Shown piece by piece: positions 10,201 to 64,000 of a DNA stretch of 64,000 nucleotides. The notes beneath the pieces are model-generated. The model was not told the origin of the DNA. It saw only the letters and a program-made list of their open reading frames with translations, and ran no database searches. Position 1 is the stretch's first letter. Each line of letters opens with the position of its first letter. The position numbers were made by a program, and so were the translations under genes. This DNA is from Geosiphon pyriformis uo1. Its lineage: Eukaryota > Fungi > Glomeromycota. The stretch lies in the NCBI GenBank assembly GCA_016748015.1, contig JAAOMT010000786.1, positions 193,903-257,902 on the forward strand. Direction: 5' to 3'.

Positions 10201-12862
10201 TGACAAATTTATCAGATTTTTTGGTAGCATTTATAATGGTCGCACTAACAGAGTAATGATGAATTTTGATTTAACTGATGGATATCATGTTCATGATGGA
10301 TTGGATCAGAGGGAGATTTTTTCACCACTTCTCTGGCACATATTTTATGATTTGCTTTTGGGTGAGGTTAAGAGACAAGAGAGCATTTGTGGTTACAGGT
10401 TGATTTCTCATTTCATTTTTAAGACTGACCAGGTGGAATCTCAAGCTGGGCTGATGTCATTTCTGGCTGCTAATGTTTTTGTTGATGATACTATCTGGGT
10501 CAGTAGCAGTCAGGCTGCTACACAACACATCCTCAATGTTGCTAGTGATTTCTTTCACTTAAATAACATTTCGATAAACAATGACAAGACTGTGACCATT
10601 CCTATCAACTGTTGGGTCACTGTTCTTTATCTGACTATCAGTGGTCTGCCAATTTCCATTGCTAAAAGAGGTGAACCTCATTGTTATCTGGAGATTTTTT
10701 TATTTTCTGAGGGTTTTTTGAAGCCTAGCTTAGTTAAGGCACATTTGGATGTTTGGTTTTTCATTAATCACATTCTAAGAAAAGTTATTTCAAATAAACA
10801 GTTTGCTTATTTGGTGTCTTCAGTTTTCTTTCTAATCATTAGCTACAAAACTCAATTCAGTTTTATTTTTTTCAATGTGTGTAATAAATGGGATGCTTTG
10901 ATTTGCAAGAACCTGAAATTCAAATCTGGGCTGTCTCTGGACTTTCCCAATGATGCACTTTATCATTTTTCCTTGTACAATTTAAAAACATTTGAGCAGA
11001 TTCAGGCTGAAAGCAAGTCGGCTTCTGTTATTGCTTTTGCGAATTCGGTTAGTGTTTTGGGTTACTTGTTTTCTCATAGGTCTCATAATCTCCAGGTTTT
11101 CAGCTGGCGTCTTCATTACCCTTTGTTGTTTCCTGTTCATGTTAGAGTCAGCCCTTTGAACAACTTTTTGGCAGGTATGGTTCGTATTTTTTCTGGGTGT
11201 GATTTATCTTTGAGTGGCTCTCTGGCCGGTGCTTTTCGTCTTTGGGGCAGTACTCCTATGTCTTTAGTTCTCGGTGAGGCAATTTTCTTCAAATGTGTCT
11301 CATCCCTTAGGCATTATGGTATTGCTTTTATAGAACAGCTTTGTGACCAGAATGGCGTTGTTTTTAATTGGAAGACTTTCAAGCATTGGAAAAGACTGAA
11401 CTTCCATGGTCTGGTCTCCTCCTGGTTTGATCTCTCTGTTCGTTTTTTTGGTAGTGTAGCTTTTCCTTCTGGTTGTTTTTCTCATGAGGGTGGATGTGGC
11501 TCTTCTGACATCCATCAGTCTCTTGATTTTGGTGTTATTTGTAATAATCTGTTGAATGTTGGTGCCGCCTGTTTCTCTGTTTACACAGATAGATCTCTGA
11601 GTAACTTGAGCACTGTTGACATGTTGGCTGGTACTGCAGTTTTCTTTGAGGACATTGATTCAGGTCTGGGTGTGGGGGTTTCTGGTTTGGTTTCTTCTAC
11701 TTTGGCAGAATTGCAGACCATTGCTTTAGCTCTTGAGTGTGTTCCTTCTTTTCGTTTGATTGACTTGTTTTCGGACAGTCAGGCGGCTATAGATGCTTAC
11801 AAGTTGGAGTCTTTATTGGTTGGTCCTGATTTCAGGAATTGTTGTTGGATTGAGCACTGTTACATTGCCAATGTCATTCATCGCAAAAATTTGGATGTTA
11901 ATTGGATTAAGATTAAGAGCTATTCGGGTGTTTCAGACAATGAGCATGCTAATGCACTGGCTAAGGATGCTGCCTTTTCTGCCTGGAACCTGCTCTACTT
12001 GATCAGTGAGAGGTTTTTGAAGGCTGGTGTTGATATGGTTTCTGGTAATTCGAGGCATTTTGTTCATAACATATTCAGGTCAATCCATTGCATGTATTGA
12101 AAGATTGGTTCTGGTTCCTGGATTGTTCCAGGTTGTCTGCATGCTAATATTGACTGGTTGAGGTCTTCTCTGGTATGGCACCTGGATTCTCACATGGCAA
12201 CTGGTTTTACTAGTATTCGGACAACTGGTTTTCATACATATTTTATGAAAGCCCTCCATCATCGCCTTCCTGTAGCTGTGTAAAAGCATCTGTATAATAG
12301 GGGTTATTTTAGTGTAGTTTGTTTGTTCTGTGATGAGGTTGAAGTCTCAGACCATGTCTTTTCCTGCTCTTCTAATGCTGATATTTGTGCCAGTTTGTTG
12401 GACACTTATGCAACTGCCTGGGAGGTGCATTCTGGTCTGTTTTGCTCTTTTTTGTGTGTATTGCAGTTGTTGTCAACTTGCATTTCAGATGTGACTGTCA
12501 GTACAGCTCTGTGTAAGGGCTTTGTTTTCAGCAATTGGTATCACAAGTCTGTTTCTGTTTACAAGGATCCTAAGGTGGCAGTGGTTAATGTTGTGAATTT
12601 TGTACATGAGTTTTGTCTTGCATTTCATGATAATATCTGGCTGGTCCGTGCAAAACACCAGGCCATTATGGAGAAGAATAAGCTGATTTCACATGATGGT
12701 TCCATTTCTGTCGCTGTTTCTGGTTTTTCTATGTGGCTTTCGGCTGGAGTGATTAGGTTGTTGGGTGTTGCTGATGTACTTGGCATCAGTTTTGGATATT
12801 ATAAGTGTTGTCTGTTTTATGCAGGTGTTGGTAACATGGCTTCTGTTCATATAAGTGCATAG
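7208..12862 (+). pseudogene. LINE ORF2: APE endonuclease - RT - RNase H - C-terminal Zn finger
   Basis: APE motifs ATCNVxGLN, GGDFN, IDY and DTDH (split by the LTR). RT motifs KAAGLSGI, GLDQ and FVDD. RNase H motifs YTDxSL, LAELQ, SDSQ and KSYSG..NE.AN. CxFC...HVFSC. Confidence 0.93.
7877..8848 (-). mobile_element. Solo LTR, family A (same as the H LTR)
   Basis: Termini TGTTACCGG...CTGGTAACA. 4-bp TSD CTAA/CTGA. Colinear with 58099-59038 and 29601-30553. Removing it restores the LINE APE reading D-Y-F-D-T-D-H-K. Confidence 0.95.
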
Positions 12863-30716: not shown

Positions 30717-31493
30717 TGTTACTCATAAAAAAGAAAACAGATATAGAAAAATAGTAGACCAATAAAAGAGTAGTAGTTAGCACATAAGCACATTGCTCAG
30801 CAATGTGAGCATTGCTTAAGAAATTATAGCACATTGCTCGAAAATATAAGCAATCTCATAGAACCCAAATTATGTATATATAGTGGTAGCATTAGAAGTA
30901 GAAAAGACAGATCTCTCAATTTAGATTTTATCTAAGCCACTTTCTAATCCACAAATATCAATAAATAATTATTCTCTATTTCCAATCTACTTTCTACTAT
31001 CAACACTTCATGTTGATAGTTATTAACACTTAACTACTCTGGAACAATAGCTCTTGATCATGACTATTAATGAAATACTAATTTGTACATTGCCTTGGCT
31101 CATTTTTTTATTTTTTTTTATTTTTTATTTTCTTTGATTTTATTGTTGTATACTAATTGATTAGGGATTAAAGTACTGAGTTATTGATATTACAGATAGC
31201 CTGGTAAAAAACCCAGAAATAAGGGTAGAATCATATATATATATTAACAGATAGCTTACTAGAAGGGCACGACTGCCAAAATAAACTGGCCACTATGCTA
31301 AAGACAGAAATTGGGAAAACAACTCACCAACCAACTATATTGTTATTGAATCTCTGTTCATTATACAAAGAACTCAATTTTAAAAACCTTTAGATACACT
31401 CCATATACCAGTATTACCAGTATTATCAAAATATTGAGCACCAAGTTATGAATTTGTTATTTGATTTGAGACCCCAAATAATCATCTGTAACA
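30717..31493 (+). repeat. 5' LTR of B
   Basis: Direct repeat of 39908-40722; TATATATAG at about 30875. Confidence 0.96.
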
Positions 31494-34500: not shown

Positions 34501-37500
34501 TAACAATGACTCAAATGAACTACCAACCTAGGAATGGAAAAAAACCGACAAAGGAAAAAAAAAAAAAAAAGGAAAAAGATATAACTAAAGGAACCACCAT
34601 TACAAAAGAAATAACTAGTGGCTGGGAAAAAAAATACTCACGGAAACTGATTAAAGAGCCACCATATATACCTCTTAAATGCAAGGACTGTAGAAAAAAA
34701 CTTTCTTTCATGGGAGCTTGGGTTATGCCAGACAAAGATTACTGGATGCGAACTCACTATTATTGCAAGCTTTGCCACTGCAAACACTATGGCTATCCAA
34801 AAAAACAAGGCAAGTAAAACAACAAACCATGTCTCGCATGTGGCAAACAACTACTGGACGAAGAAATGTGGAATGACATTCCTAGACAAAGAGGAATGTG
34901 TAACACCTCATGTTAATACACAATTCTCATCAGTAATTGGATGAGTCATGATATGCCAATAACTGCCATCTGGCACCATGCAATATTTTGCTTGGACAGT
35001 TACCCACATGATGAAGACAAGATCTGGCAGATGACAAACACCAAAGTAGCAGGTGCCACACCTAGTGAAATATTGAAAATCAAGAACAACCCTCTGGAGC
35101 CAGTTAACATTGTTCTGATTCCTAATCCAGACACTTTCCTGGATCTAAAAGCAGGCCCAAAAGAATTCTATGAGCATTACCAAAATTTGGCACTAACAAA
35201 AGAGGAACAAGAGCAGTGGTTAGCCCAAATAAACACCCAACTATGTAACTATTGTTTGATCCCATATGACTTTTAATATTGTAATAAGTGTGATCTCATT
35301 TAAAATCCACCACCACACATAATCTACATAATTCCAGAGGAGGAACCAATCAGCAGCTGCACATCAAAATCAGAATCAACTTTTAATCCTGATTCAAACT
35401 CTAACAACAATGATAATAAAAATAATAGTTCCAGTTCCACTCAATATGGCAACAAATATAACAATGATTTGGACTCTAATTCAAATCCTGAAACATACAT
35501 CACACTCCCTAATCTCACCAAAGAACAAGAACTCAAATAGTTCAGCGATAATAATGAAGGTATTATGCCAAAATGCATGCATGATACTGATGCAGAGTTT
35601 GATCTAAGATATCCAGAGAAATATTCCATCAAATTGGAACCACATTCATGTACTTGTATTGATTTGAAAATAGCACTGGAAATTTCAGCAATGACAATGG
35701 TTCAACTAGCATTTAGGAGTAGTTTAGCGAAAAAAGGGATCAACATCAGAAGAAGAATAATTGATGCAGAATATGTAGGAAATATTATTGCTATGCTACA
35801 AAATGACTCAGAAAAAACATACATTATAGATCCAAATGAAAAGATAGCACAGGCAATTTTCCTATTTCTGGTAAAAATAGCTCAGCTAGTGTCAGTAAGA
35901 AACAAAGAAGAATTAGAAATCACAGTTAGAAAAATACAGGAGTTTAGATCAATAGGTAAAATAGATGTATCAGTTAATATAGCAGAGGAAAAAATTGTTA
36001 ACAAAAGAGAAATTATCTCCACCTGTCAATCAATTTCTATTCCACCATATGACCAATACATGATAGTTATAGAAAGGAAAGTAAAAAATCAGATGCAGAT
36101 TTTTAAGACAGAAGCAACACTGTGTAAATCAGGAAAGATTGGACTTACCAATCTTTACATACCAGCCAAGAATCATAATCACATCAAAATTCTCATCTAC
36201 AACAACACAAGAAATATTGTAGAGATACTAGAAGAAACTATCATCAGTTATTTAACCACCAAAATTGAAGACCAATGGCCAGACACTATTCCAGATTTTC
36301 CACAACTATGCAGATATGTGAATATTACATCACAAACCATATACAGATGAAAAGAATGTTATCTGCTTCAACAAAAACAGTTGGAACAGATAAACATGGA
36401 GAACTTAAACCCACTACAATGTATGCAACTTAAGATGTTACTCAACAATTTTAATAACATTTTTGCCAGCAAAAACAAATTTGGCAGAACTAACATAATC
36501 CAATATCAAATCAAGATCAGAGATGCAATGCCAATCAAACAACAAGTATACAGAGTACCACCAGCCAGTCATGAAATCATTTGTCAAGAAATTAACCAGA
36601 TGCTTGACAATGGGTTAATTCAACCATCAATGAGTCCATGGTTATCACCAGTGGTATTAGTCCATAAGAAGAATGAAAAAATCCGTTTTTGTGTAGACTA
36701 CCGAAAACTGAATAGAGTAACTAAAGGTGATAACTATCCAACACTAAAGATCCAAAAATTATTCGATGCTTTTGGCAGAAAAAAATGGTTCTCTATATTA
36801 GATTTAGACAGTGATTACTGGCAAGTAGCCATAAAGCCAGAAGATAAAAAGAAAACAGCTTTCACAACATAAGAAGAGAATTTTGAATTTGAAGTTATGC
36901 CATTTGGCTTAATGAATGCACCAGCAATATTCCAATGGCTTATAAAAATTGTTTATACTGGACTACTGTAGAAATCAGTAGTTGTTTACTTAGACAACAC
37001 CAATATGTTCTCAAAAACATTTGATGATTATCTATATCATCTCTAACAAGTGTTCAAAAGACTAAGAAGAGCTGGATTAAAGCTAAATGCAACCAAATGT
37101 TTCTTTGGAAAAACTGAACTTAAGTTTTTGGGACATGTTGTAAGCAAAAATGGAATCAAAACAGATTCAGACAAAATTAAAACTGTCAAGAACTTTCCAG
37201 TACCAAATAATCTTACAGAATTGAGAGCATTCTTAAGATTTGCTGGATACTACCACCATTTCATTAAAGACTTTTTCAAAATAGCTCAATCACTATACCA
37301 GCTCTAAACAAAGAACACTAAATATGAATGGACAGAAACCCAACAAAAAGCTTTTGATACATTAAGAAGAAAGCTTATTCAAGCCCTAGTACTGATCTAT
37401 CCAGATCATAGCAAGCCATTTATAATTACAACTAATGCATCTGGTCAAGCATTAGGAGCAGTACTATTACAAAAAGAACCAGATAGAAGAAAACATCCAG

Positions 37501-37790
37501 TAGCTTACACTAGTAGAAGCTTAAGTTCAGTGGAAAAAAACTATAGAACTCCAGCACTGAAACACTTAGCTATCTATTGGGCCATTATTAAATAGAAAAA
37601 ATACTTGAGTCAGAAGTTTAATGTATACACTGATCACAAAGGATTGACTTCAATCCAGAAGCAAGAATTTGGAGATGATTACCATGCCAGATGGAAAATA
37701 GAACTTTCACCATTCAATTATACAGTACATTATAAAAAAAGAAAAAACAATAGAAATGCTGACAGATTGTCGCGAATGAAACAAATCTAA
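31556..37790 (+). pseudogene. B gag-pro-(Cys-rich)-dUTPase-RT-RNase H
   Basis: Capsid KLEKFTGKED..WL, Q-rich tract at about 32430-32515, CHYC..H..C knuckle, protease LILDSGS, dUTPase motifs, RT SPVVLV/FCVDYR/YLDN, RNase H YTDHK...NADRLSR. Confidence 0.93.
35565..35960 (+). pseudogene. dUTPase domain of B pol
   Basis: The five trimeric dUTPase motifs in order: DAEFDL, RSSLA, IIDAEYVGNI, KIAQ, RKIQEFRSIG (decayed RGxxGFGSTG). Confidence 0.92.
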
Positions 37791-37820
37791 AAACATTTCA
37801 ACCCAAAAATATAACAAAAG

Positions 37821-39203
37821 ATGAATATACAAAAATATCAACAACTCCAACATTATATAAATACCCAATTGTTTAAAGAAAAATTATCTCAACAGAAACA
37901 AAAAAGCATAAAACAACAATCAAAATATTTTATCAACCATCAAAATATACTTTACCAGAGAAACAGAAGAAATTCAAATCAACCAACCAGAGTAATTACT
38001 GAACCAGAAAAAAAAACAATACTATTTAACATGCATTCAGATCCAACAGCAGGACATTTTCATAAAGAAGCAACCATGAAAAGAACCAAAAAAAGATACT
38101 ATTGGTCATCAATGTATTCAGACATTATTCAATACATTCAAAGTTGTGATGCTTGTCAAAAAAGAAGTGAAACAAAACTCAGTAAACCATTAAGACCAAT
38201 TAAAGTAAAACAACTATTCGACTGTATTGGAATTGATTTAGTAGAACTATTGACAATCACCAGTAGAGGCAACAGATATATTGCAGTAGCCATGAACTAT
38301 CTTACTAAATGGCCAGAAGCAAAAGCCATTCAAAAAGCAGATGCAGAATCCATTGCCAAATTCATTCATCAAGATTTGATTTGTCAACATGGATGTCCAA
38401 AAGAACTACTATCAGATTAAAGAACCCACTTTGTGAACAGAACATTGACAGAATTAAGTCAAAGATTTGGAATTAAAAGACCATTATCATCACCGTACCA
38501 TTTACAAACAAATAACTTAGTTGAAAGATTTAATAGAACACTGTGTGAAACAATAGCCAAAATTAGCCAAGAAAATCAGGACGAATGGGATTTGTTTATA
38601 CCATCAGTATTATTTGCTTATTAGACAATGAAACAAGATACCACACAAGCAACACCATTTTAATTGATATACGGTAGAACAGCAACATTACCAGTTGAGA
38701 TAAAAGTCAAAACATATTCAACAAAACCAATAACAGAAGATAATTTTCAAGAAACATTGTTGAAAAAAACATATGACTTAATAGAAACACTAGAAAACAG
38801 ACAACAAAAAGCAGCTAATAACATCCAAAAGTCACAAAAAAAGCAAAAAAAACAACACAATAACCAACTATTAGACAAACCAGTTGAATTCATGATTGGA
38901 GACAAAGTACTATTACATCATACCAAAGTGGAAAAACAATGGAGTAGAAAATTTGATCCCAAATGGGACAGACTATTTTACATAGAAGAAATTCTAAGAA
39001 ATAGAGCTTATAAATTAAGATAAGACAACAAAATCTTAGCCAAAGCAGCACATGGTAATAGACTGAAATCATATCACCAGATAGCATCATTATCTACCAA
39101 TAACATTCTACAACTGGGAGTACAAAGAATACTAGTTCAACCAGAGAAGATTCCACAAAATCTGGAACCAATCATAGTTATTGAACCAAACACATCAAAT
39201 TGA
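37821..39203 (+). pseudogene. B integrase (own ATG)
   Basis: HHCC (H..GH..CDACQ), IGIDLV, LLSD, NxLVERFN, and decayed GPF motif KFDPKWDxxFYI. No chromodomain seen. Confidence 0.93.
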
Positions 39204-39907: not shown

Positions 39908-40722
39908 TGTTATTCATAAAAAAGAAAACAAATATAGAAAAATAGTAGACTAATAAGAGAATAGTAGTTAGCACATGAGCACATTGCTCAGCAATGTGAA
40001 GCAATATCAGAAATCACAGCACATTGCTCAGCAATATGAGCATTGTTTAAGAAATTATAGTATATCACTCAAGAATATGAGCAATCTCGTAGAACCCAAA
40101 TTATGTATATATAGTGGTAGCATTAGAAGTAGAAAAGACAGATCTTTCAGTTTAAATTTTATCTAAGCCATCTTCTAATCCACAAATATCAATAAATAAT
40201 TATTCTTTATTTTCAATTTACTCTCTACTATCAACACTTTATGTTAATAGTCATTAACACTTAACTACTCTGGAATAATAGCTCTTGATCATGGCTATTA
40301 ATGGAATACTAACTTATGTATTGCCTTGGCTTATTTCTTTATTTCTTTTTATTTTTTCTTTTCTTTGATTTTATTATTGCATACTAATTGATTAAAGATT
40401 AAAGTGCTAAGTTATTGATGTCATGGATAGCCTGGTAAAAGACCCAGAAATAAGGGTAAAATCATATATATATTAATGGATAGCTTACTAAAAGAGCATG
40501 ACTGTCAGAATAAACTGGCCACCATGCTAAAAACAGAAATTGGGAAAACAACTTACCAACCAACTATATTGTCATTGAATCTCTGTTTATTATACAAAAG
40601 ACTCAACTCTAAAAACCTTCAAATACACCCCATATACCAATATTATCAGCATTATCAAGATATTGAGCACCAAGTTATGGATTTGTTATTTGATTTGAGA
40701 CCCCAAATAATCATCTGTAACA
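39908..40722 (+). repeat. 3' LTR of B
   Basis: Direct repeat of 30717-31493, with an additional U3 repeat unit. Confidence 0.96.
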
Positions 40723-42112: not shown

Positions 42113-43419
42113 TTAATTTTTGTTGATCATTTGGGTTGGTATTACCACAACAGGCAACCAATCAGGTCATTTATAATATTTCTTGAGTTGTATATTATAA
42201 ACAAGACGATTATTGAAGATTGTTCTGGATTGATTTTGAAGAATATAAGAACCATTGTTCAAAACTTTGTTAATTATAAAGAGTTCTTTTTATCAGCTAG
42301 AGAATTTATTACCATAAACATTGTTTTTGTCTGAATAGTATTCTAATACCAAGTTACCAACACTTAAAGAAAGTGTTTTATAGGTTTTCTTTCTTTTAAG
42401 CTTTTTTTAGAACTGTTTTATCTTTTCAAAAGCAATTATTTGTGCTTTTATCAAGGAGTCAAGAATGATACCAAGTTTTCTTTGCAAAATGTCTTTGTAA
42501 TTTTCTATTGTGATCTTTTCAAAAGGTATTGTTTCAATATTAGTTTCTATTGATAGTATTGTCATGTATCTATAGAGCAGATAAAAAGGTTTATAACTTG
42601 TTATATTATGATTCACAGTTCTATAAGCAAACAAAACTGAAAACAGTACTTTGTCTCATAAGTTTGTTTTTTCACTGGTTTTGGTTAGGGTTTTACATAA
42701 TGTTCTATTAAAATGTTTTACTAGGCCATTTGTTTGAGGGTAATAAGGGGAGAAAAATTTATGACATATTTCCATTTTTCTACAAAGTTCTTTAACCAGT
42801 GTACTGAGAAAAGCTTTTCCTTTATCAAATAAAAGTTCTTTGGGGCAGCCATAATGGCAGATAATATTTTTATAAATGAAATTGGCTATTGAGACTGCTG
42901 TTTGATCTGGAGTGGCTCTTGCTTCTACTCATTTTGTAAGATAGTCAGTAGCTGTAATAATATATCTGTTGCCATCAGGAATTATTGTTAAGATCCAACA
43001 ACATCTATACCAATTCTGTCAAATGCTTGACTTACAGAGATTAGATGAATATCTTCTTTGCAATTGGGTTTGTCTCTTCTTTGGCAGATGTTACAGGTTT
43101 TAATATATTCAGCAATGTTTTTTTCCAAAGTAGGCCAATAATAGCAAGCTAAGATTTTCTGAATTGTTTTTGTTTTTCCAAAGTGTTTAGCTAATAGATT
43201 AGTATGCATGTTGTATATTACAATTTCTCTTTTTTCAAATCTGATGACTCTTTGGGGGTGGTCAGGGTCTTTTCTGTTTCTTTTATATAATTGGTTCTGG
43301 TGAATCAAATAGAAATTTGATTGTTTGTGCAAATGTTTTTTTTGCTGTCAAGTGTATTCTGGTGGGTATTGTCTTTTACCCAAAAATTCTATTAAAGCAG
43401 AGTAGTTGTCCAAGTCCAT
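42113..43419 (-). pseudogene. F integrase (own ATG at 43419)
   Basis: H..KH..CNICQ, FDRIGIDVV, FAYRT. Confidence 0.9.
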
Positions 43420-43997
43420 TATTGTGTTTATTTGTGAAGAAGTTACTAATAATTAAGTTGGTTTGGTTTGAGAGATTGTACTGTCACTGGATGATAAGTC
43501 TAGAGAGAACATCAGCATTTTGATGATTTGCTTCTTTGCAGTGTTGAATATTATAATCGAAATCATCCAAGTGGAGTATCCAGCGAGTTATTTGTTTGTA
43601 TTCTAGCTTTTTTTATTGTGCAGCTAAACCAAGGCTTAATGATCTGTTACCACTAAGAATTTTGCACCAAGAAGATATTGATCTCAGTAACTAATAGCCC
43701 AAACTACTGCTAAGCATTTCTGTTCAATAACTAAATAGTTTTTTTTTGCTGATATAAAGGATCTACTGGCATATGCTATGGCATGTTTTCTGCCATTTTT
43801 ATCTTTCTGTGAAAAGACAGCACCAAGTTTATAGTCAGATGTATCAGTATGGAAAATGAAAAATTGGTCCAGATTAGGTTGCTTGAGAATTGGCTTAGTA
43901 ACAAGTTTTTTTTTTAGAATTTCAAAAGCTTTTTGTTAATAAGTGCCTCAATAATAATTAACATTTTTCTTGAATAGCTGATTGAGAGAAAAAGTGA

Positions 43998-46183: not shown

Positions 46184-47056
46184 TATTATGGTTTAAGAAT
46201 TTAGCAAAAGAATCATAAAAATAATACAAACTATTCAATCATAATATAGTGCAGTAATAATTTTAGAAAGGTAATGATTAACATAGTAGCAAACACCATC
46301 TCGCAATAATGGCAAGCATCAGTTCACAATAACAGCCAACACCAACTGGTAATAGCAGCAAACACCAGGTTGAAATATCAAAAAAAAGTATTACAATGTG
46401 TTTTCTTGTAGAACTACAAACATGTATATATACAGTAGCTTTAATATTGGGAAAAGACAATCAAGTAATAAAAATCATAACTTATCAAGCAATAGATCCA
46501 ATTTTATCCAACAAACTTCACTTTAAATCATACTTTCAAATTAAATATCTCAAGAAACCTTTAAATCAAAAAGAAATAAAAAAGAATATTTAAAACTGAA
46601 TTATTACAACCCAAAGTATTAAGAAACTTACTTGTATTATTTATTGAATGAAACTATCATTCATTAGCTAAATTCCTTGGAAGAATAATTCTTGATCAAG
46701 ATTATTTACGTTGTTACTAATTGATAAAAGCTTTATTGTAAGAATTAGGAAAAGCGCTAAAGACCATTAACATTCTGTGTTTCTAGATTAGAGAAACACA
46801 TTAGGCAATTGCAAGGATAGCCTCAGAGAAGACTCCAGACAGTGAGTAGATTTCAGTTCAGCCTTTAAGAAAGAGTACATAAATACACACAACAATTAGG
46901 AATTAAGAAATAACTTACATCGCAACATTAAAAAGAAAGCCTTCAGTATAACAGTGACATTATCACACAAATAGAATTGAGGAACTCACGAAAGACTGAT
47001 TGCAATTAAAACGGGATATCAGCAATTAAATATAACAAAAAGATTATTCCGTAACA
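46184..47056 (+). repeat. 5' LTR of G
   Basis: 46356-47056 is directly repeated at 54766-55467; ends GTAACA. Confidence 0.95.
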
Positions 47057-50100: not shown

Positions 50101-52838
50101 GATCCTTATCTGTGACTGGGTAAAAAAAGGAACATTGTTCGAAGCAGCATTCAACAGAGCATTAAAAAGACTACAGCACTACTCACATGACAAGGATGAG
50201 TTGTACAACACCACACAAGCCAAAGTAAGAGAAGGAACTGCTAAAGAAATATGACACTGGAAAAAGTCAGCCGAAGTAGCTGACAAAGTCACCAGCTACA
50301 ACATGTTTGACCCAATGGACAAATTCCAGAACTACTACCAACAACTATGCCCCACTTGACAAGAGCAAGAACAATACCTTGCCCAAATCAACACTTACCT
50401 CTGCAAAAACTGTCTTATCCTGTGTCAAAATCAGTGCTGTAAAAAGTGTCGAGATGAAAGGGACTTAGAAAAAAAAATGGAAATTGAGAATCAGCAGTCT
50501 CAAAATAATCAATAAATTAACAAGACTCACTTGATGGTCTTGAGTCAGAAAAATTTGTAGCCTATACTGACCTAGAACAGGTGATTGACATTTGATACTT
50601 TGACAATGAGCACTTAGGAATAATACCCAAAAGAGCCCATCCAACCGATGCCGAATTTGATCTATGTTATCTGGAAGACCAATCCACAATATTACCACCC
50701 AGGAGCATCACCAAAATCGACCTAAAAATAGTGGTTGAAATTCCACCAGGAATAATGATTCAAATAGCATTGCAATCAAGTTTTGCGAAAAAAGGAATAA
50801 GCATTCAAAGAGGAGTAATTGACTCCGGATACACTGGAAATTTGATGGTTTTGCTACAGAACAATTCAGAAAAGCCTTATACTATTGAATCTAAGGAAAA
50901 GATTGCACAAGCAATTTTCCTACCATTGGTAAAAATTGGAAAATTCATGTTAGTGGAAAATTGTGAGGAATTGTTACAAACAATGAGAGAAACTTTTGGT
51001 TTTAGATTGACAGAAAAAGGAATTGAAGCAAATTTTGCTGAAACAATAGAGAAAAAAGATGAAGTAATTAAAAATGAGTGGTTTATCATGCTCCTACCAT
51101 ATAGAAAATCAGAAATAAGAATAAAAAGGACAATTAAAGAAAAAGACTTAATATTTGAGCCCTATCCAGAAACTTGCCAACAGTTTCTCATAAGACTTAC
51201 TAATCTTTTTATTCCAGCTGATAAAGCTCAATGGATAAAAATTTCTATTGCAAACACCACAAAAGAATCCGTCTACATTCTGGAAGATACTATTATTGGA
51301 TACCTCAGAACAGAGCTAAAAAATGCATCAACACCACAAAAAATTTTAAATTTCCCAGAAATCATCCTCTATTGTGAACTTACTTCAATAAATTGGCAAC
51401 AACCGTTAGAATGCTATTAATTTATGCCAGAAGAATTGGCCAAATTAAACATTGGAACAATGGATTCTAACCAACAGCGACAATTAAAAGCATTAATTTT
51501 AAAATACTCTGATATATTTTCATGAAATAACAAATTTGAAAAAACCAACTTAGTTCAACACCAAATCCTTACTGGAGACGCCAGACCTGAAAAACAACAT
51601 GCTTATCAATGAAACATAATTTTATCAGAGAAGAAGTCCAAAGCATGTTGGAAAAAGGAATAATACAACCATCAATGAGCTCATGGTCTTCACCAGTTGT
51701 TTTAGTAAGGAAAAAGAATAGAAAAATTAGATTTTGCATCAACTATCGCAAACTAAACAGCAAAACAACCAAAGACTCATACCCAATACCATTAATTGAT
51801 GAAATCTTCAATGTTTTTAGAGGAGCAAAATAGTTTTTTACACTGGACTTGACCAGTGGGTACTGGCAAGTGGAAATAGACTCAAAAGACAAGCATAAAA
51901 CAGCATTCACAACACAAAATGGCAATTATGAGTTCAATGTAATGCTATTTGGATTAACAAATGTCCCCATGACATTCCAAAAACTAATAAACGTAATTTA
52001 CTCTGGAATTCTGTGGCAATCTGTTGTTGTCTACTTGGATAATACAAATGTTTTCTCATCAAAATTCACAGATCATCTCCAACATTTACAACAAGTTTTT
52101 GAGAGATTGAGACATGCTGGACTTAAACTAAATCTAGAAAAATGTTTCTTTGGGAAAAATGAGCTAGCATTTTTAGGACACGTAGTTAGAAAAGATAGAA
52201 TAAAACCAGATCCATCAAAAATAGACAAAGTGAAAAATTTTCCAGTATCTCAAAATGTTTCAGAAGTTAGAAGCTTTTTAAGACTCGCATCTTACTACTA
52301 CTGCTTTGTAGAAAACTTTTCAAACATCACCAAACCCCTTAATTACTTACTATTCAAAAATGTGAAATTTGAATGGACTGAAGCACAACAAAAAGCTTTT
52401 GAGTACCTTAGACAAAAGCTCATTGAATTACCAATAATGATCTATCCAAATTTCAACAAGAAATTCATTTTGGCCACAAATGCCTCTGGAACTGGACTTA
52501 AAGCTATTTTGTCACAAAAAGATGATAATAAAAGAGAATGTGTAATTGCTTATGCCAGCAGAAGTCTCAGTACGGCAGAACAAAACTATGCAGCACATGA
52601 ACTTGAATGCTTAGCAGTAGTCTGGAGTTGTATTCACTTTGACACATATTTACAGTACCAACTCTTTGAGATTACCACAGATTATAGAGATCTGGTCTGG
52701 TTAAATAACAAAAAAGCACTAAAAAGAAAATATGCCAGATAGTCATAAATGTTAGCACCATACAATTATATTATTAAATACAAAGAAGATACCAAAAATG
52801 CTAATGCTGACTGTTTGTCAAGAATGAGACACACATAA
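47139..52838 (+). pseudogene. G gag-pro-(Cys-rich)-dUTPase-RT-RNase H
   Basis: CYFCKCVGHLISQC, LILDSRS, dUTPase (AEFDL, GVIDSGYTGN, KIAQ) at about 50635-51020, RT YLDN, RNase H ATNAS/ELECLA/NADCLSR. Confidence 0.93.
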
Positions 52839-52867
52839 AAATCACCAACCCATCCACCACAACAACA

Positions 52868-54247
52868 ATGAACAATCACCTTTACAAAAACCTCAGCCAA
52901 TACTTGGAAACACTACAAATAAACAAAAAAATGCCAGTAAAACAGCTAATTAAGCTCTAAAAATTAGCAAAACACTATTTTATCTAAAATCACATACTTT
53001 ATTACTGGAATCGACAAAATCCAGATAATCCATTAAGAGTTATAACCATGGATGAAAAAGAAACTATCTTATTTAACATGCACTCAGATATTTATTCAGG
53101 CCACTTTGGAAAAACAGCAACCATCTAATGTCCAACTAGCCATTATTATTGGCCAAAAATAAGTTCAGACATAATCCAATACATAAAAAATTGTGACTCA
53201 TGTCAACAAAGAGAAGAAGCAAAAACAACAGAATTATTAAGACCAATAAAAGTTGGACAGCCATTTGACAGAATTGGAATTGATTTAGTTGGACCCTTAC
53301 CAATAACAACAAAAAACAACTGTTATATTGCAGTAACTGTAGACTATTTTACCAAATAGCCAAAAGTTAGAGCTATTAAAACAGCTGATGCTATTTCTGT
53401 AGCTCAATTCGTACATAAAGACTTAATTTGCTGGCATGGATGTCCACAAGAATTACTATCAGATCAAGGCACACACTTTGTAAACAGCACCTTAAAAGAA
53501 CTTAGCCAAAAATTTGGAATCAAGCGACCACTGTCATTACCATACCATCCTCAAACAAATGGATTAGTTGAAAGATTTAATTGCACATTATGCAAATCAC
53601 TGGTAAAAATTAGTAACAAACATGAAAAAGAATGAGATTTGTTTATACCAGCAGTATTACTAGCATATAGAACAGTAAAACAAGATACTACACAATTCAC
53701 ACTATTTGAACTAGTTTATAGAAGAAAAGCCACATTACTAGTTGAACTTACTATCCCAATTTATCTAAGTGACACTATCACGAAAGCAACATTCTAGAAA
53801 ACATTACTTAGAAGAACATATAAATTAATGGGAACTTTAGAAAACAAAAGAAGAAAAGCAGCACAAAATATTGAACAATCACAAGAACAACAAAAAGTGA
53901 GACATGATAACTAGTTACCAGATAATATAATTAGCTACAAAATTAGAGATAAAGTATTATTACATCATACAAAAATGGAAAAACAATAGAGTGGAAAATT
54001 TGATCACAAGTGAGATGGACCATTTTATATTCACAAAATACTTGGAAATGGAGCATACAAGCTAAGACTAAATGATAAAATATTAAAAAAAGCAGCACAT
54101 GATAACCAGCTGAAATTCTATTACAGTAAACCAGTAATAACAACAAAAACACCCAGAATTGGAACACAATTACTTTTGATTTTACCAGAACAAATTCCAC
54201 GAGATTTAGAACCAATAGTTTTAATTGAACATTATTCAAAAAGATAA
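52868..54247 (+). pseudogene. G integrase (own ATG)
   Basis: H..GH..CDSCQ, FDRIGIDLVGP, LLSDQG, NGLVERFN, DGPFYI. Confidence 0.93.
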
Positions 54248-54331
54248 TTAATCTTAGATCACAGCAAAAATGATTTAAGAACTATAAAAATGCATGCAAA
54301 AGATTTCAAAATAATAGTCAAAATTAAAACA

Positions 54332-54745
54332 ATGATACTTATTCCAGAAAACATTAACAATATAACTCAACAATTAGTTAAAAGCTTACAACAATTAAAA
54401 TCCAATCTGGAAATCACAGTTAATAGCTCCAAAATAACATATATAAAAAGAACAATAAAAAATCCAAAAACAAGAAAAGAACATAATTTTGAACCATATA
54501 ATATTACCAAACATAACAACAAATTTATCAGCAAAGTTATTGAAAAATTAGAGATAGCATTGGGCAATACATTAATAATGGAAGAAATAGAAATAAATGA
54601 ATTAACACCAGACACATTTAGCAACTTGAAAACGAAATTTCCAATTAACTACTGTTATTATCAACTAGGAAAGCACTTGAACATACAAACATTATACTCA
54701 AAAGACTCAACTAGAGTGTTTGACAAAACAACTATCCAATTATTA
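54332..54745 (+). pseudogene. G ORF3 (unknown function), truncated by the assembly gap
   Basis: MILIPENINNITQQL...FPINYCYYQLGKHLNIQ; close to B ORF3. Confidence 0.8.
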
Positions 54746-54765
54746 NNNNNNNNNNNNNNNNNNNN
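54746..54765. other. Assembly gap (20 N)
   Basis: Run of N. It must hide the ORF3 end, the PPT and about 170 bp of LTR start, so the true gap is longer than 20 bp. Confidence 0.99.
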
Positions 54766-55467
54766 CAGCAAACACCAGGTTGAAATATCAAAAAGAAAGT
54801 ATTACAATGTGTTTTCTTGTAGAACTACAAACATGTATATATACAGTAGCTTTAATATTGGAAAAAGACAATCAAGTAATAAAAATCATAACTTATCAAG
54901 CAATAAATCCAATTTTATCCAACAAACTTCACTTTAAATCATACTTTCAAATTAAATATCTCAAGAAACCTTTAAATCAAAAAGAAATGAAAAAAAATAT
55001 TTAAAACTGAATTATCACAACCCAAAGTATTAAGAAACTTACTTGTATTATTTATTGAATGAAATTATCATTCATCAGCTAAATCCCTTGGAAGAATAAT
55101 CTTTGATCAAAATTATTTACGTTGTTACTAATTGATAAAAGCTTTATTATAAGAATTAGGAAAAGCACTAAAGACTATTAATATTCTGTGTTTCTAGATT
55201 AGAAAAACACATCAGACAATTGCAAAGATAGCCTCAGAAAAGACTCCAGACAGTAGGTAGATTTCAGTTCAGCCTTTGAAAAGGAGTACATAAACACACA
55301 CAACAATCAGGAATCAAGAAATAATTTACATCATGACATTAAAAAGAAAGTCTTCAGTATAACAGTGATATTATCACATAAATAGAATTGAGGAACTCAC
55401 GAAAGACTAATTGCAATTAAAACAAGATATTGACAATTAAATATAACAAGAAAATCATTTCATAACA
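54766..55467 (+). repeat. 3' LTR of G (visible part)
   Basis: Direct repeat of 46356-47056. Confidence 0.95.
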
Positions 55468-59876: not shown

Positions 59877-61262
59877 TTAAGTGTTCGAGTTTGGTTGTTG
59901 TTCTATTATAATTATTGGTTCTAAATTTTGGGGAATATCTTCAGAATTAATTAAAGGGGAATGTGTACCAATTTGTGAAATTAATGGTTCAGGATTGTTT
60001 CTGGAATGATAGTGTTTCAATCTGTCTCCATATGCAACTTTTGCTAGTATTTTGTCATCAAGTCTTAACTTGTATGATCTATTGCCTAGAATTTCGTGAA
60101 TATAAAATGGTCCATCCCATTTGTTTTCAAATTTTCCACTCCATTGTTTTTCAGCCTTAGTTTTGTGTAAGAGAACTTTATTTCCAACTTTAAATTCGTT
60201 GGTAATAGGTGGTAATTTGTTGTCATGTCTTTCTTTTTGTTGAGCTTGGGAATATTTAATATAAGTTGCTGCTATTCTTCTTTTTCCTTCCAGTATACTA
60301 AGAAGGGTGTAGGCTCTTCTTTGGAGTGTTTCTTAAAAGTTTTCTTCATTGATTGGTTGCACTGAGTATGTTTTCACTATGAAATTAATTGGTAATGTTG
60401 CTGTCTTTCCATAAGTAAGATCAAATGGTGTGTGTTTCATAGTATCTTGTTTTAGTGTTTTGTATGCTAGTAACACTGATGGAATAAAGATATCCCATTC
60501 CTGCTCAAAGTCTGTTGAGACTTTGGCTAAAAATTCACACAATGTTCTGTTGAAACATTCTACAAGTCCATTTGTTTGAGGATGATAAGATAATGATAGA
60601 GGTCTTTTGACATTGAACCATTCACAAATTTCTTGTATTAAGTTGTTCACAAAATGTGTTCTTTGATCAGATAAGAGTTCAATTGAGCATCCATGTCTAC
60701 AGATAATGTCTTCATAGATAAAATTTGCTACTGATTTTGTGTCTGCTCTTTGGATGGCTCTAGCTTCAGGCCATTTGGTAAGATAATCCACTGTAACTGC
60801 AATATAACAATTTCCTTGGGTTGTGATAGGTAATGGTCCGACTAAATCAATTCCAACTCTGTCAAAAGATTGTCCAACTTTGATTGGATTTAAAGGTTCT
60901 GTGGGGCAAGTTTCTCCTCTTTTTTGACAACTATCACAAGATTCTACATATTGTCAAATGTCTTTTTGCATGTAAGACCAAAAATAATGTTCAAAGATTC
61001 TTTGAATTGTTCCATCTCTTCCCAAGTGTGCTGAAGAAGAATCTGTGTGCATGTTGTATAGAATTGTTTCTTTTTCATTTTCCTGTACTAATCTGAGTGG
61101 TTGGTCTGAGTTTTTACAATTTTTGTAATATATTTTGTTATGGTGTATAAAATATTGTTTGGATTGATATTGTAATCGATGTTTTTCACTTGGAAACCAA
61201 TTTTCTGGTATAGTGAGAGTCTCCAAATAGTTTTTGATGTTGTTGTAATTTTCTAGATCCAT
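59877..61262 (-). pseudogene. H integrase (own ATG at 61262)
   Basis: H..AH..CDSCQ, FDRVGIDLVGP, LLSDQ, NGLVExFN, WDGPFYI. Confidence 0.93.
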
Positions 61263-61330
61263 TATTGGTAATCTTGTTGTTTTGTCCTACTGTTAAGTTT
61301 GTTGGTGTTTTGTTGGTGTTGATGTTAGTA

Positions 61331-64000
61331 TTAATATTGTCTCATTCTTAAGAGGCTATCAACATTAGTGTGTAGTTTTCCTGGTTTGTGATGTATAATG
61401 TATTGGTAATCTGTTAGAAAGTCATTCTATCGAGACTGTTTGGCACTTTGTTCAGTTTTCTTTTTATTAAGCCATTTGAGGCCAATATTGTCAGTTATTA
61501 TGTCAAATTTTTTTCCATTCTTTAGGTATTGTTGAAAGTGTTTGAAAGCCCAGATGACTGTAGCGGCTTCCAGTTCAGTTGAGCCATATTTGAGTTCTGT
61601 TGGCTTGAATGTTCTGCTGGCATAAGCAATAACTTGTTTCTGGCCATTTTCATCCAATTGTGATAAGATGGCACCAAATGCTATGTGTGAAGCATCAGTG
61701 GCTAATTGAAATCATTTGTTGAAGTCTGGGTAAGCAAGAACTGGGGCTGTTGTCAATTTTGTTTTGAGAGTTTCAAAAGCTTTTTGTTGTTCTTTAATCC
61801 ATTTGTATGATATGTTTTTGTTGGTAAGATAATTGAGTGGTTTAGCAATTTCTAAGAATCTTTTTATGAATTTTCGATAGTAAGAGCCTAATCCTACAAA
61901 TCCTCTTAGTTCTGTAGTATTTTTGGAAGTTTGAAAGTTTTTGACAGCACTGATTGTTCCTGGATTTGGTTTGACTCCATTTTTACTAATTATGTGTCCA
62001 AGAAAGATCAAGCTTGTTTTTCCAAAGTGACATTTCTCAATGTTTAACTTTAATCCTGCTTTCCGTAATTGTTGAAAAACTTCTCGCAGGTGAATAAGAT
62101 AAGTCTCAAAGCTTGGTGAGTATACATCAGTGTCATCAAGATAGACAACTATTGATTGCCACAAGAGTCCTTTATATACAACATCTATAAGACACTGAAA
62201 TGTTGCTGGTGCATTGCAGAGTCCAAAAGGCATAACATTGAACTCATAGTTTCCTCCCTGGATGGTAAATGCTGTTTTGGGTCGATTTTTTGGGTCTATT
62301 TCGACTTGCCAGTATCCATTTTCCAAGTCTAGAGTTGAGAAGAACTTGGCTTTTCCTAGAGCATCTAGCATGTCATCAATTCTTGGAAGAGGGTAGACAT
62401 CTCCAATTGTAACACTATTCAGTTGTCTATAATTAACACAGAATTTGATTTTTCCATTTTTTTTTTAACTAAAACTATTGGTGAGGCCCAAAGACTTCTT
62501 GATGGTTGAATCAATCCATTATTGAGCATTCTTTGGACCTCTTCTCTGATGAATTGGTGGCTGGCAGGTGGTACTTGATAAGCTTGTTGACATTTTGGTG
62601 GAGCATCTCCTGTATGGATCTGATGTTGAACAATATCCGTTTTTTCTAAGTCATTGTTGTCTTTTGCAAATATATCTGTAAATTCAGCTATCAATTGTTT
62701 CAATTGTCTTTGTTGTTGAGATTCTAAGGGATTTATGTTGATTCAAGAAAATTTTTTCTCCAAAAAGTGGTAGTTTTCAGTAGTGGGAATGATATTTGGA
62801 TTTGGGAGTAGAGTGTGCCTTACAATTTCGATGAAATTAGAGACAATTTGAGGGTTTTCATTTTGAAAAATATTGCTGTGTATGATTCTAATCTCTAGTT
62901 TGTTTAATAAGACAATAGGGTAATTATTGGGGTTGTAGAATGTAACTTGAATTTTTTTCATTCCTTTGGGAATATAAACGTTTAGAATTAAGATTTCATG
63001 CTTCAAACAGATTTGTTCATTGGATTCAAAGATTTGTTGTATAGTGGTGGGTTTTGAGCAAGTGTAAATTTCGTGATGTTCTTCAAAAGGTGAAATGGTA
63101 ATTGGCTGGGAAAGTTGAAGAATCTGGTAAGATTTATTTTGTGTATTAAGAGCTATGTTTACTGGAACTGTAAATTGTCTAGTTGAACCAAAACTTTGAG
63201 TTCCTCTTTCACTTTTTCCCAATTGTTCTTTGTTGTTTACTAATTGTAAACCCGAAATGTTGATTAAGGGTAAGTAGATTGCTTGAGCAATTTTTTTAGC
63301 ATGTTCAATTTTGAATAGTTTGTCTGTTTCATTCTGCAACATAATAGTAATGTCTCCAGTGTATTCTGTATCTATAACTCCTCCTCTAATATTGATTCTT
63401 TTGCTTGCCAATGATGATCTGGAGGCAATTTGAATCATTACTCCTGGTGGAATTTCAAGAGCAATTTTGAGATTGATTTTTGTCAAGGACTTTGGTTGAA
63501 GAACCAAAGTATCTTTTCCTGGGTATCTTAAGTTATATCCAGCATCAATTTTGTGTGCTTTTTCTGGTCTGATTCTTTGGCCATGATTGTCAAAATATTT
63601 AAGTTGTAGAGATGGTTGTTTTTCAAGAAGATAGATGGGAGTGGTTGGTAGTTCTTCTACTAGTTCAGATACTCCAAATTCGATTTCATTTTCATCATTC
63701 CCATCTGGCAGAGGAATGCTAAAAGCATAACATTCTAAACACTATTGGTCATTACAAGGCATAACACATTCTTCACACAATTGAATGTTCATTTGCTCTA
63801 ATTATTGAATTTGAGCTTCTTTGGTCGGATATATGTGGCTTGTAATTTGGTGGTAGGTTTCTACTTTATCTTTATAATCAAATCCAGCTAATTCTATGGT
63901 ATACTCAATATATTCAGCTTCTTTCATTTGGTGGACATCTTTTTGGGTGGCTCTATTAATCAATGCCATTGCTAAATCAAAAATTATTTCAGCATCATGA
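61331..64000 (-). pseudogene. H pol: Cys-rich, dUTPase, dUTPase-like, RT, RNase H
   Basis: ORF 62743-63507 has RSSLA, GGVIDTEYTGDI, KIAQ and RGTQSFGST. ORF 61712-62371 has MPFGLCNAPATFQ and YLDD. Confidence 0.94.

Follow-up and report, generated by a model that had tools for sequence, protein, structure and literature searches.

In canonical Ty3/Gypsy retrotransposons (Ty3, Tf1, and the chromoviruses), integrase (IN) is the C-terminal part of Pol and is released by the protease. In textbook LTR retrotransposons and retroviruses IN enters the particle within Gag-Pol, an arrangement that fixes the amount of IN and places it beside the cDNA. A 64,000-nt stretch of the Geosiphon pyriformis uo1 genome (GCA_016748015.1, contig JAAOMT010000786.1, positions 193,903-257,902, forward strand; hereafter the window) raises the question of whether IN is encoded here by a gene of its own. 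The window contains only four IN regions, those of elements B, G, H, and F, and all of them are split from pol (Table 1). According to an initial annotation of this DNA, pol stops four codons past the LSR motif of RNase H in each element and is followed by a spacer of 30 (B), 29 (G), 68 (H), or 64 nt (F) and then by an ATG; when the junctions were re-read, both the stops and the coordinates held. The description of the spacers as A/C-rich is likewise borne out for the window families, with G accounting for 3.7% of spacer positions vs 14% in flanking coding sequence (P=3e-6). All four window starts also have the proposed A at -3 of the IN ATG; the same base is found at eight of the 11 IN starts compared overall and, the sequence being A-rich, is given no weight.

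Assignment to Ty3/Gypsy follows from TG...CA LTRs flanking the coding region and a primer-binding-like site at the 5' LTR (B and G), from the Pfam order PR-RT-RNase H-IN in the same two elements with matches to RVT_1 and RT_RNaseH_2, and from the closest fused relatives, which are Ty3/Gypsy-type polyproteins, some with chromodomains. The LTRs of B run TGTTAC...GTAACA and those of G end in GTAACA, with TTGGTG adjoining in both cases. The window copies are all decayed, with many stops, LTRs that are 90-93% identical, and transition-biased change. Copy-specific stops interrupt the 3' part of pol in B, and IN of this copy is open for 199 aa and decayed beyond. In G, the ATG at 54290 that had been taken as the start of an "ORF3" proved to be a copy-specific ACG>ATG change, and the terminal TAA of IN (54245-54247) is kept in all 14 copies readable there, of 19 rows in the alignment. 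Aligned to an intact integrase from Rhizophagus, all four window INs match from its residue 1, exactly at the proposed ATG.

Table 1. Features of the four split elements, in window positions (1 = first nucleotide of the 64,000-nt window).
Element	Feature	Position	Strand	Basis or remark
B	5' LTR	30717..31493	+	TG...CA ends, then TTGGTG primer-binding-like site; ~90% identical to 3' LTR
B	pol 3' part: dUTPase, RT, RNase H, ending NADRLSRMKQI	35541..37787	+	Pfam, translation
B	pol stop TAA	37788..37790	+	kept in 27/30 genomic copies
B	spacer, 30 nt, A/C-rich, no ATG	37791..37820	+	second in-frame TAA at 37812-37814
B	IN cistron: H2C2 zinc finger and rve core, ATG at 37821	37821..39080	+	Pfam, alignment
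B	3' LTR	39908..40722	+	LTR comparison
F	IN cistron, ATG at 43419, starts MDLDNY	42170..43419	-	alignment; one frameshift near 42993 in window copy
F	spacer, 64 nt, no ATG	43420..43483	-	junction reading
F	pol stop TGA after LSRLIIQ	43484..43486	-	stop kept in 99 of the 100 genomic matches listed
G	5' LTR	46356..47056	+	93% identical to 3' LTR
G	pol 3' part: dUTPase, RT, RNase H, ending NADCLSRMRHT	50596..52835	+	Pfam
G	pol stop TAA after LSRMRHT	52836..52838	+	kept in 30/30 genomic copies
G	spacer, 29 nt, A/C, no G, no ATG	52839..52867	+	IN frame -1 relative to pol
G	IN cistron, ATG at 52868	52868..54247	+	Pfam, alignment; ATG kept in 28/30 copies
G	remnant of fourth conserved ORF, YYxLG motif	54248..54934	+	no conserved start here; partly N-masked
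G	3' LTR	54766..55467	+	LTR comparison
H	IN cistron, ATG at 61262, starts MDLENY	60000..61262	-	alignment
H	spacer, 68 nt, A/C-rich, no ATG	61263..61330	-	junction reading
H	pol stop TAA after LLRMRQY	61331..61333	-	first stop base T in all 100 genomic matches listed

The stops of Table 1 are a property of the families. More than 1000 candidate matches per family were found in the G. pyriformis genome. For B and G, 30 fetched genomic copies each were scored copy by copy; the IN ATG is kept in 24/30 copies of B as well as in those tabulated for G, and each loss of a stop or ATG in these copies is a single transition or a 1-nt indel. H and F were tallied by a genome-wide search with a junction pattern, which for H had N at the first stop base and returned 183 genomic matches (184 for F); requiring a base other than T at this position returned none in the genome for H. 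Because nearly all sampled copies of four families share it, the stop is not single-copy damage. Judged from these copies and from the relatives described below, the arrangement of stop, spacer, and ATG is the ancestral state both within each family and for the clade as a whole, rather than the result of decay in single copies. It had been argued earlier that random decay is unlikely to hit one codon four times. The rejection of decay stands, but not the premise of four independent hits, since the stop is shared by descent.

The split is also present in intact elements from related fungi, namely Rhizophagus irregularis and R. clarus, and from metagenome contigs. A young R. irregularis element, with LTRs that are 99.4% identical, has four intact ORFs in the order gag, pol, IN, and a fourth conserved ORF (ORF4). 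An 88-nt overlap places its pol in the -1 frame relative to gag, the canonical frameshift layout, while pol ends in LSRIR and is separated by an 86-nt gap from the IN ATG, four codons upstream of which the IN frame is closed. This copy supports the view, already put forward in the initial annotation, that the lineage is natively multicistronic. An open, in-frame linker between RNase H and IN in young copies had been named as the finding that would overturn this view; young and intact copies carry the split too. Over 11 independent junctions the gap between pol and IN measures -4 nt in two elements (an ATGA overlap), 29-88 nt in eight, and 596 nt in one, and IN lies in the +0, +1, or +2 frame relative to pol (10 junctions with frame tabulated). 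In the relatives, pol stops 2 to 12 codons after LSR or extends into a tail exceeding 200 aa. The IN N-terminus conforms to M[DNE]xxxYxx[ILF]xx[YF][LI] in 11/11 junctions. IN proteins are 43-75% identical between elements and the six intact contig elements have full-length ORFs, so that purifying selection must have acted on IN behind the stop.

A tree of RT-RH sequences, one of the checks proposed at the outset, groups the split elements in one supported clade (support 97/84; core 97/92), with fused Pol-IN relatives outside it except for one gene-model artefact and one long-branch row. Protein searches draw the same boundary. Pol proteins at least 48% identical to the RT-RH of G end 1-5 residues past RNase H, the exceptions being tailed forms, truncated proteins, and one gene model, whereas matches at most 42% identical that carry integrase domains all run at least 416 residues past RNase H. 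In these fused relatives the linker between RNase H and IN is variable (25-90 aa); the split clade has a non-coding gap in its place. Searches with IN found 2146 stand-alone proteins, and most of the best 120 are 400-450 aa long and cover the query from Met1; when no length filter was applied, 21 of the 22 matches at least 44% identical had IN at the protein N-terminus. As placed by the tree and these searches, the window elements are members of one Ty3/Gypsy clade of arbuscular-mycorrhizal fungi with a separate IN gene, and the predicted Pol of this clade (PR, with or without dUTPase, RT, and RNase H) natively ends just past the LSR motif of RNase H. A full-text literature search, with subscription journals and Repbase reports outside its coverage, returned no description of a Gypsy lineage with separate IN.

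We consider it highly probable that this clade natively carries IN as a separate cistron, whose translation begins at an AUG of its own. The contrary idea that the stops are damage, so that the families would be dead or non-autonomous, would have lost their linker, and would receive IN in trans from intact fused elements, fits the decay of the window copies, their LTR divergence, and their transition-biased change. It is nevertheless scarcely credible, given a stop that nearly all sampled copies of four families share and that recurs in intact elements of other species with complete IN ORFs, a core clade with no fused member bar one gene-model artefact, and purifying selection on IN behind the stop. 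A second idea keeps the Pol-IN fusion but has it made by readthrough, frameshifting, or splicing of the spacer, the split being only apparent. A precedent for the last of these is the plant Ogre element, in which splicing removes a stop-containing intron located between the regions for protease and RT and so restores one ORF. As in Ogre, a stop-containing stretch interrupts the pol coding region, but here it sits between RNase H and IN, and removal of a GT..AG segment that would restore the frame is impossible in 5/11 junctions, which have none; the remaining junctions offer only non-consensus GT donors in or beside the conserved end motif of RNase H. Frameshifting could draw on G and loci L065 and L067, where IN lies in the -1 frame of pol and this frame stays open over the 11-19 codons that precede the ATG, far enough to reach into the 3' end of pol. 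However, the IN frame closes before pol in H, F, L062, L066, and L069, and close relatives differ in frame. Simple readthrough is met by gap stops even where IN is in frame, two in B, whose spacer contains a second TAA (37812-37814), and at least four in L068. The NCBI gene model of R. clarus joins RT-RH to the H2C2 region, but the locus underneath shows a pol stop and an 87-nt gap before IN. In the R. irregularis element a canonical overlap, of 88 nt, does exist at the gag-pol junction, and Met and the IN N-terminus are conserved precisely at the ORF start. At most junctions the sequence leaves no room for a fusion, whether by a frameshift, by readthrough, or by splicing, and we regard it as very improbable that the split is only apparent.

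How a cistron in this position would be translated is less clear-cut, and the spacers themselves offer the best guide. The eight short spacers (522 nt in total) contain no ATG, where shuffling predicts ~5.5 (joint P=0.003) and the ATG density of the flanks 10.7, and the 596-nt spacer contains one vs 7.3 expected (P=0.003). The IN AUG is the first AUG past the pol stop in the eight short-gap junctions. The ATG-free zone starts at the pol stop itself: four codons ahead of it, B, G, and H still have an ATG codon. A layout of the reinitiation type is thereby present as the ATGA overlap in 2/11 junctions, the ATG-free gap of 29-88 nt in 8/11, and the 596-nt gap with its one ATG in 1/11. Because the spacers are free of ATG and the IN ATG is the first past the pol stop, restart after termination is favoured, and we tentatively incline to the reading that IN is reached by restart after termination at the pol stop. 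Ribosomes would complete pol, terminate, and remain on the full-length RNA, and those retained would scan the AUG-free spacer and restart at the IN AUG, in a coupled termination-reinitiation like that of LINE-1 ORF2, the hypovirus UAAUG, and the caulimovirus pregenomic RNA. The outcome would be little free IN, at a level set separately, and this IN would have to reach the particle or the cDNA ends without Gag-Pol as its carrier.

This reading carries difficulties of its own. In eukaryotes, ribosomes that have translated an ORF as long as 1000-1500 codons normally reinitiate with very low efficiency unless a dedicated cis element or factor helps them (PMC5902531). The amount of IN made by restart would be very low once a -1 gag/pol frameshift precedes it, and the way into the particle for free IN is not obvious. 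Furthermore, ORF4 lies as far as 245-970 nt behind IN, and in three elements ATGs occur in this gap, which suggests that ORF4 at least uses another route, one that IN might share. We can imagine, as an unlikely extension, that the full-length RNA is polycistronic for gag-pol, IN, and ORF4 and that restart depends on a factor or cis element supplied by the element itself, such as a TAV-like ORF4 or a spacer motif; a system of this kind would be new outside the Caulimoviridae, and the clade would provide the first LTR retrotransposon with a free, trans-acting IN. A candidate motif, GGAYWACCC...GAWTWAAC, lies directly upstream of the ATG and is common to three Rhizophagus-type spacers. ORF4 follows IN and is conserved across the clade. 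It has no Pfam match and no feature-based ESM Atlas match, comparison of its AlphaFold model (pLDDT 84.6) with the PDB, viral, and Atlas libraries gave no fold match, and sequence searches with it find only close Rhizophagus relatives.

Two other routes would likewise leave IN a native separate cistron. Leader-spliced subgenomic RNAs serve retroviral env and foamy-virus pol, and a subgenomic RNA made by splicing of the leader to an acceptor near the pol stop, or from an internal promoter, is a possible, if doubtful, source of IN. Two downstream cistrons (IN and ORF4) resemble the organization of complex retroviruses, and the same or a similar RNA could serve ORF4, whereas restarting ribosomes would hardly cross the ATG-bearing gaps that precede ORF4 in the three elements. 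A 5' leader needs an AUG-free stretch just as a scanning ribosome does, the Rhizophagus-type motif could be a promoter or processing signal, and branch-point-like and AG motifs end the spacers of B, H, F, and L062. There is no AG, however, from the pol stop to the ATG in G, L068, and L069, and no conserved splice donor was found at the gag start in the six elements searched. The two ATGA-overlap elements have no spacer, so that an acceptor or RNA start would fall within pol coding sequence with ATGs close upstream, and the onset of the ATG-free zone right at the pol stop, with the ATG of B, G, and H only four codons earlier, also speaks against a subgenomic RNA. The other route is internal ribosome entry on an unstructured A/C-rich spacer, independent of pol translation. 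Leaders of the (CAA)n type support initiation with fewer factors, and the four window spacers, being strongly G/T-poor and A/C-rich relative to their flanks, are expected to be unstructured. This composition does not extend across the clade, the R. clarus spacer being 52% T and that of R. irregularis mixed, and two elements lack any spacer. Rfam detected no family at threshold, IRES families included, in window positions 30000-64000, and we judge internal entry decidedly unlikely.

Set against known systems, the clade combines a conventional element with an unconventional end to Pol. Like canonical Ty3/Gypsy elements it has TG...CA LTRs, Gag, aspartic protease, RT, RNase H, and IN (H2C2, rve) in the usual order, and a gag/pol frameshift overlap in the intact R. 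irregularis copy; unlike them, its Pol stops past RNase H, its IN has a Met of its own, and a fourth ORF lies behind. A single Pol polyprotein that includes IN belongs to the usual description of Ty3/Gypsy rather than to its formal criteria, and 11/11 junctions here have a stop plus gap, or an ATGA overlap, in its place. In foamy viruses (Spumaretrovirinae), a spliced RNA carries the AUG at which Pol translation starts, independently of a Gag fusion, and Pol has to be packaged by separate interactions. They separate the whole of Pol (PR-RT-IN), however, and IN is cut from it, whereas the clade separates IN alone. A stand-alone Gypsy-type integrase gene is also found in Ginger1/GIN (see PMC6839031 for the related GingerRoot), but these are cut-and-paste transposons with terminal inverted repeats and no RT, and IN of the clade lies between LTRs, downstream of RT-RH.

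Closer parallels to the layout come from polycistronic RNAs. The pregenomic RNA of Caulimoviridae (CaMV) is polycistronic and uses TAV-activated reinitiation that follows long ORFs and is independent of distance (PMC5902531). The likeness extends to reverse transcription and to consecutive long ORFs with short overlaps, fused stop/start codons, or short gaps; however, Caulimoviridae differ from this clade in having no integrase and no LTR cycle, and their restart requires the viral TAV. No TAV-like activator is known outside the Caulimoviridae (PMC5902531), and none was recognised in the clade elements, where ORF4 is without a Pfam or fold match. LINE-1 RNA is bicistronic (PMC4091050), and the fungal hypovirus CHV1 uses UAAUG (PMC2699510). 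In LINE-1/SART1, CHV1, and the calicivirus TURBS, as in the clade, a short inter-ORF spacer or an AUGA/UAAUG overlap precedes the downstream ORF, which in these systems encodes an enzyme made at low level once the upstream ORF terminates (PMC4091050, PMC2699510, PMC5902531). Unlike the clade, these are other element classes, and the clade's upstream ORF is ~1000-1500 codons long.

An abundant and successful clade, with young intact copies in Rhizophagus, thus breaks the link between Gag-Pol and IN. If confirmed at the RNA and protein level, the arrangement would bear on how a fungus translates a cistron behind a very long ORF, on how free IN locates its own cDNA, and on whether the uncoupling lets IN act in trans on other elements. 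Were polycistronic restart to hold true, such elements could represent a stepping stone to integrase-only transposons such as Ginger. There are also consequences for annotation. Gene callers either report these INs as "DDE-type integrase" genes of the host or wrongly fuse them, and transposable element classifiers that expect one Pol ORF may misjudge the intactness of split elements. The long, seemingly intact IN ORFs at loci L042 and L043 proved to be artefacts of runs of N.

The 30-64 kb portion of the window is AT-rich (~30% GC) and crowded with decayed LTR retrotransposons. With an intact integrase (IN) from Rhizophagus as query, tblastn located exactly four integrase regions in the window, one in each of the families B and G (plus strand) and H and F (minus strand); in all four, query residue 1 aligns at the ATG named in the initial annotation. 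The families are far apart, since the reverse transcriptase-RNase H (RT-RH) segment of G is 47-53% identical to those of B, H or F. The LTRs of B have the ends TGTTAC...GTAACA, those of G also end in GTAACA, and a TTGGTG primer-binding-like site follows the LTR in both. Pfam matches to stop-free pieces give the domain order gag (Retrotrans_gag), aspartic protease, dUTPase, RT, RNase H and integrase with H2C2 and rve. By their LTRs, domain order and RT-RH relationships these elements are Ty3/Gypsy, and their only misfit is with the usual description of IN inside Pol.

This misfit had been noted in the initial annotation, and all four junctions are as claimed there: pol ends four codons past the RNase H LSR/LLR motif, and re-reading gave the same spacers of 30, 29, 68 and 64 nt (B, G, H and F), each followed by an ATG with A at -3. 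The pol stop codon is TGA in F and TAA in the other three families. The B integrase is in frame with pol, yet a second TAA lies inside the spacer at 37812-37814. Pooled, the four spacers are 51% A, 28% C, 3.7% G and 17% T, against 40% A, 18% C, 14% G and 29% T in flanking coding sequence (G depletion P=3e-6).

Features of the window families and of related elements (L numbers, fetched loci; L062, Rhizophagus irregularis; L068, R. clarus)
Element	Feature	Position	Strand	Remark
B	LTRs	30717-31493 and 39908-40722		~90% identical
B	Integrase	37821-39080	+	tblastn
F	Integrase	43419-42170	minus	tblastn
G	LTRs	46356-47056 and 54766-55467		93% identical
G	Integrase	52868-54136	+	tblastn
G	ORF4 remnant	54248-54934		YYxLG motif
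H	Integrase	61262-60000	minus	tblastn
L062	gag	70-1827
L062	pol	open from 1737, ends 4862		ends ...NVDSLSRIR
L062	RH-IN gap			86 nt, between pol and IN
L062	Spacer motif	4920-4948		~-28 to -3 of integrase ATG
L062	Integrase	4949-6208		frame closed just 4 codons upstream of ATG
L062	ORF4	6271-6885		205 aa, downstream of IN
L065	ORF4	9533-10324
L066	ORF4	7142-7756
L067	ORF4	8074-8748
L068	Spacer motif	7972-8000		~-28 to -3 of integrase ATG
L068	ORF4	9482-9979
L069	Spacer motif	3180-3208		~-28 to -3 of integrase ATG
L069	ORF4	4539-5159
L070	Pol tail after RNase H	5930-6580		P0145; then stop, 70-nt gap, separate integrase ORF starting MEPNNY (one locus examined)

The same layout occurs in other species. 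The first 344 residues of a G-family integrase matched 2146 proteins; among the best 120, most have a length of 400-450 aa and align with the query from Met1 onward. Species named among those listed are Rhizophagus irregularis and R. clarus, at ~50% identity. In one R. irregularis element the two LTRs share 99.4% identity over 716 nt and all four ORFs are intact; pol overlaps gag by 88 nt and is read in the -1 frame, as is canonical for frameshifting. Had the split been a product of decay, young copies might have shown an open in-frame RH-IN linker; this copy instead has a stop and an 86-nt gap. We compared eleven independent junctions: those of B, G, H and F, and others from Rhizophagus-type elements, from metagenome contigs and from a sister group with tailed Pol. 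Two have a gap of -4 nt, with stop and start overlapping as ATGA, eight a gap of 29-88 nt and one a gap of 596 nt. All three frames, +0, +1 and +2 with respect to pol, are used by IN among the ten junctions with frame tabulated, and the IN N-terminus M[DNE]xxxYxx[ILF]xx[YF][LI] is present in 11/11. In fused relatives a variable linker, 25-90 aa long, separates ADALSR from the same N-terminal helix, and in split elements this linker is the portion turned non-coding. Pol of the sister group (P0145, P0146 and P0148) runs 218-358 aa past the RNase H LSR, with a tail that is acidic, then Cys-rich, and without a Pfam match.

The split layout is real and clade-wide, and it marks a clade. An intact pol query (PR-RT-RH, 991 aa), able to return split and fused proteins alike, found that matches at least 48% identical to the G RT-RH end 1-5 residues beyond the RNase H end, with more than 20 distinct clusters ending ...SLSRIR, ...SLSRIH or ...TLSRIKH. 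Departing from this pattern are three proteins with a tail, two that are truncated and a single eukaryotic gene model. All matches at most 42% identical that carry integrase domains extend at least 416 residues past RNase H. Likewise, in an exhaustive HMMER search with no length filter, IN is at the protein N-terminus in 21 of 22 matches at least 44% identical, and integrase matches inside long proteins are mostly at most 43% identical, with one exception at 44% (P0294). A maximum-likelihood tree of 51 RT-RH segments placed 30/32 rows labelled split in one clade (support 97/84; core 97/92), leaving outside P0152 and the long-branch P0188; B, G and H cluster with the two ATGA-overlap elements (97/88). 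Only two "fused" labels fall within the clade, one on a very long branch of doubtful placement and the other an R. clarus gene model, rejected as a fused member because its own locus has a stop and an 87-nt gap. This public model (L068, 5629-9230; P0144) joins RT-RH to the integrase zinc-finger region across that stop and gap, and other public annotations label stand-alone integrases "DDE-type integrase/transposase/recombinase"; in both cases the split layout has probably misled the annotation. Full-text literature searches, with subscription journals and Repbase reports outside their coverage, found no description of a Gypsy lineage with a separate integrase ORF. The nearest published separate ORFs in LTR elements are those of plant Tat elements (PMC10508981), in which the extra ORF is an additional RNase H, not an integrase.

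Random decay of single copies had been considered unlikely, and the genomic copies bear this out. The 128-Mb genome holds over 1000 candidate matches for each family. Among 30 fetched copies of each, B kept the stop in 27, the second TAA in 30 and the ATG in 24, and G kept the stop in 30, the 29-nt spacer in 29 and the ATG in 28; ATG losses in both are ATA, a single G>A change. For H and F, the genome was searched for a 28-nt junction pattern in which the first base of the stop was left as N. H gave 183 matches, with T at that base in 100/100 among matches listed, and the same core with "not T" there had no genome match; F gave 184, with the stop kept in 99/100 among matches listed. From these per-copy tallies, the stop was already present in the elements founding each burst. 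Copies differ mostly by transitions, which outnumber transversions 5.9-fold in B and 34-fold in G. In junction alignments of loci L001-L060, C>T and G>A transitions dominate and 19-39% of copy transitions are in CpG context (a crude pairwise count), consistent with methylation-linked or deaminase-type repeat decay.

Fusion of integrase to Pol by recoding or splicing does not apply in general. A -1 shift is formally possible only for G, L065 and L067, but in these the integrase Met and N-terminus are conserved as in other elements; in B and the R. clarus element IN is in frame but several stops lie in the gap, and the IN frame of H, F and four further elements runs into a stop short of pol. When all frame-joining GT..AG removals were enumerated, five of 11 junctions had none, and the sole donors in the rest are non-consensus GTs within or adjoining the conserved RNase H end motif. 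We tentatively favor a model in which ribosomes would terminate at the pol stop, go on scanning and restart at the IN AUG, a reading that is quite plausible but far from secure. The IN AUG is the first past the pol stop in 10/11 elements. No ATG occurs in eight short spacers (522 nt together), where shuffling predicts ~5.5 (joint P=0.003) and the density in the flanks 10.7, and the 596-nt spacer holds one against 7.3 expected (P=0.003). B, G and H have an ATG four codons upstream of the pol stop, therefore the ATG-free zone starts at the stop. ATG-poor spacers and the two ATGA overlaps together are the signature of such a restart. Known parallels to this proposal are Caulimoviridae pregenomic RNAs, whose consecutive long ORFs overlap, have fused stop/start codons or lie a short gap apart and whose restart is independent of distance (PMC5902531), the UAAUG junction of the fungal hypovirus CHV1 (PMC2699510) and the bicistronic LINE-1 RNA (PMC4091050).

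The main rival, translation of IN from a subgenomic RNA, seems less likely. The 245-970 nt gaps before ORF4, with ATGs in three elements, and a conserved motif just 5' of the IN ATG in three Rhizophagus-type spacers count toward it, but several spacers are without any AG, two elements have no spacer and a conserved splice donor was not seen at the gag start of six elements. That motif is bipartite (GGAYWACCC, 4-7 nt, GAWTWAAC), occurs in elements with integrases only 55-69% identical, and might act in ribosome retention, as a promoter or in processing. For the window families, internal entry on an unstructured A/C-rich spacer is possible, but this composition is not common to the whole clade.

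ORF4, a fourth conserved ORF of 166-264 aa, lies downstream of integrase in six intact elements. Its copies are mutually homologous, sharing the motifs YYxLG and SExDF, and have no Pfam match; a confident AlphaFold model (pLDDT 84.6) is mostly helical with a small N-terminal sheet, and a comparison with the PDB, viral and Atlas libraries gave no fold match. A window ATG at 54290 was rejected as the ORF4 start, being a copy-specific ACG>ATG change. N runs, which are withheld or gap sequence, lie inside several copies (window ~54745-54765; loci L035, L042, L043, L055 and L060), and long ORFs of 544 and 579 aa in L042 and L043 are false, produced by translating them. The dUTPase domain lies between protease and RT in B (35541-36347, Pfam E=2e-16) and G (50596-51417, E=6e-20); it seems particular to a subclade, because no dUTPase is among the Pfam matches listed for the intact pol from R. 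irregularis, which belongs to the same clade. In L067 and L065, every one of gag-PR, RT-RH and IN is read in the -1 frame of the ORF that precedes it. L067 (1243-15972, a metagenome contig) holds two head-to-tail copies of one element, the ORF pattern recurring after ~8.3 kb, which suggests a tandem array.
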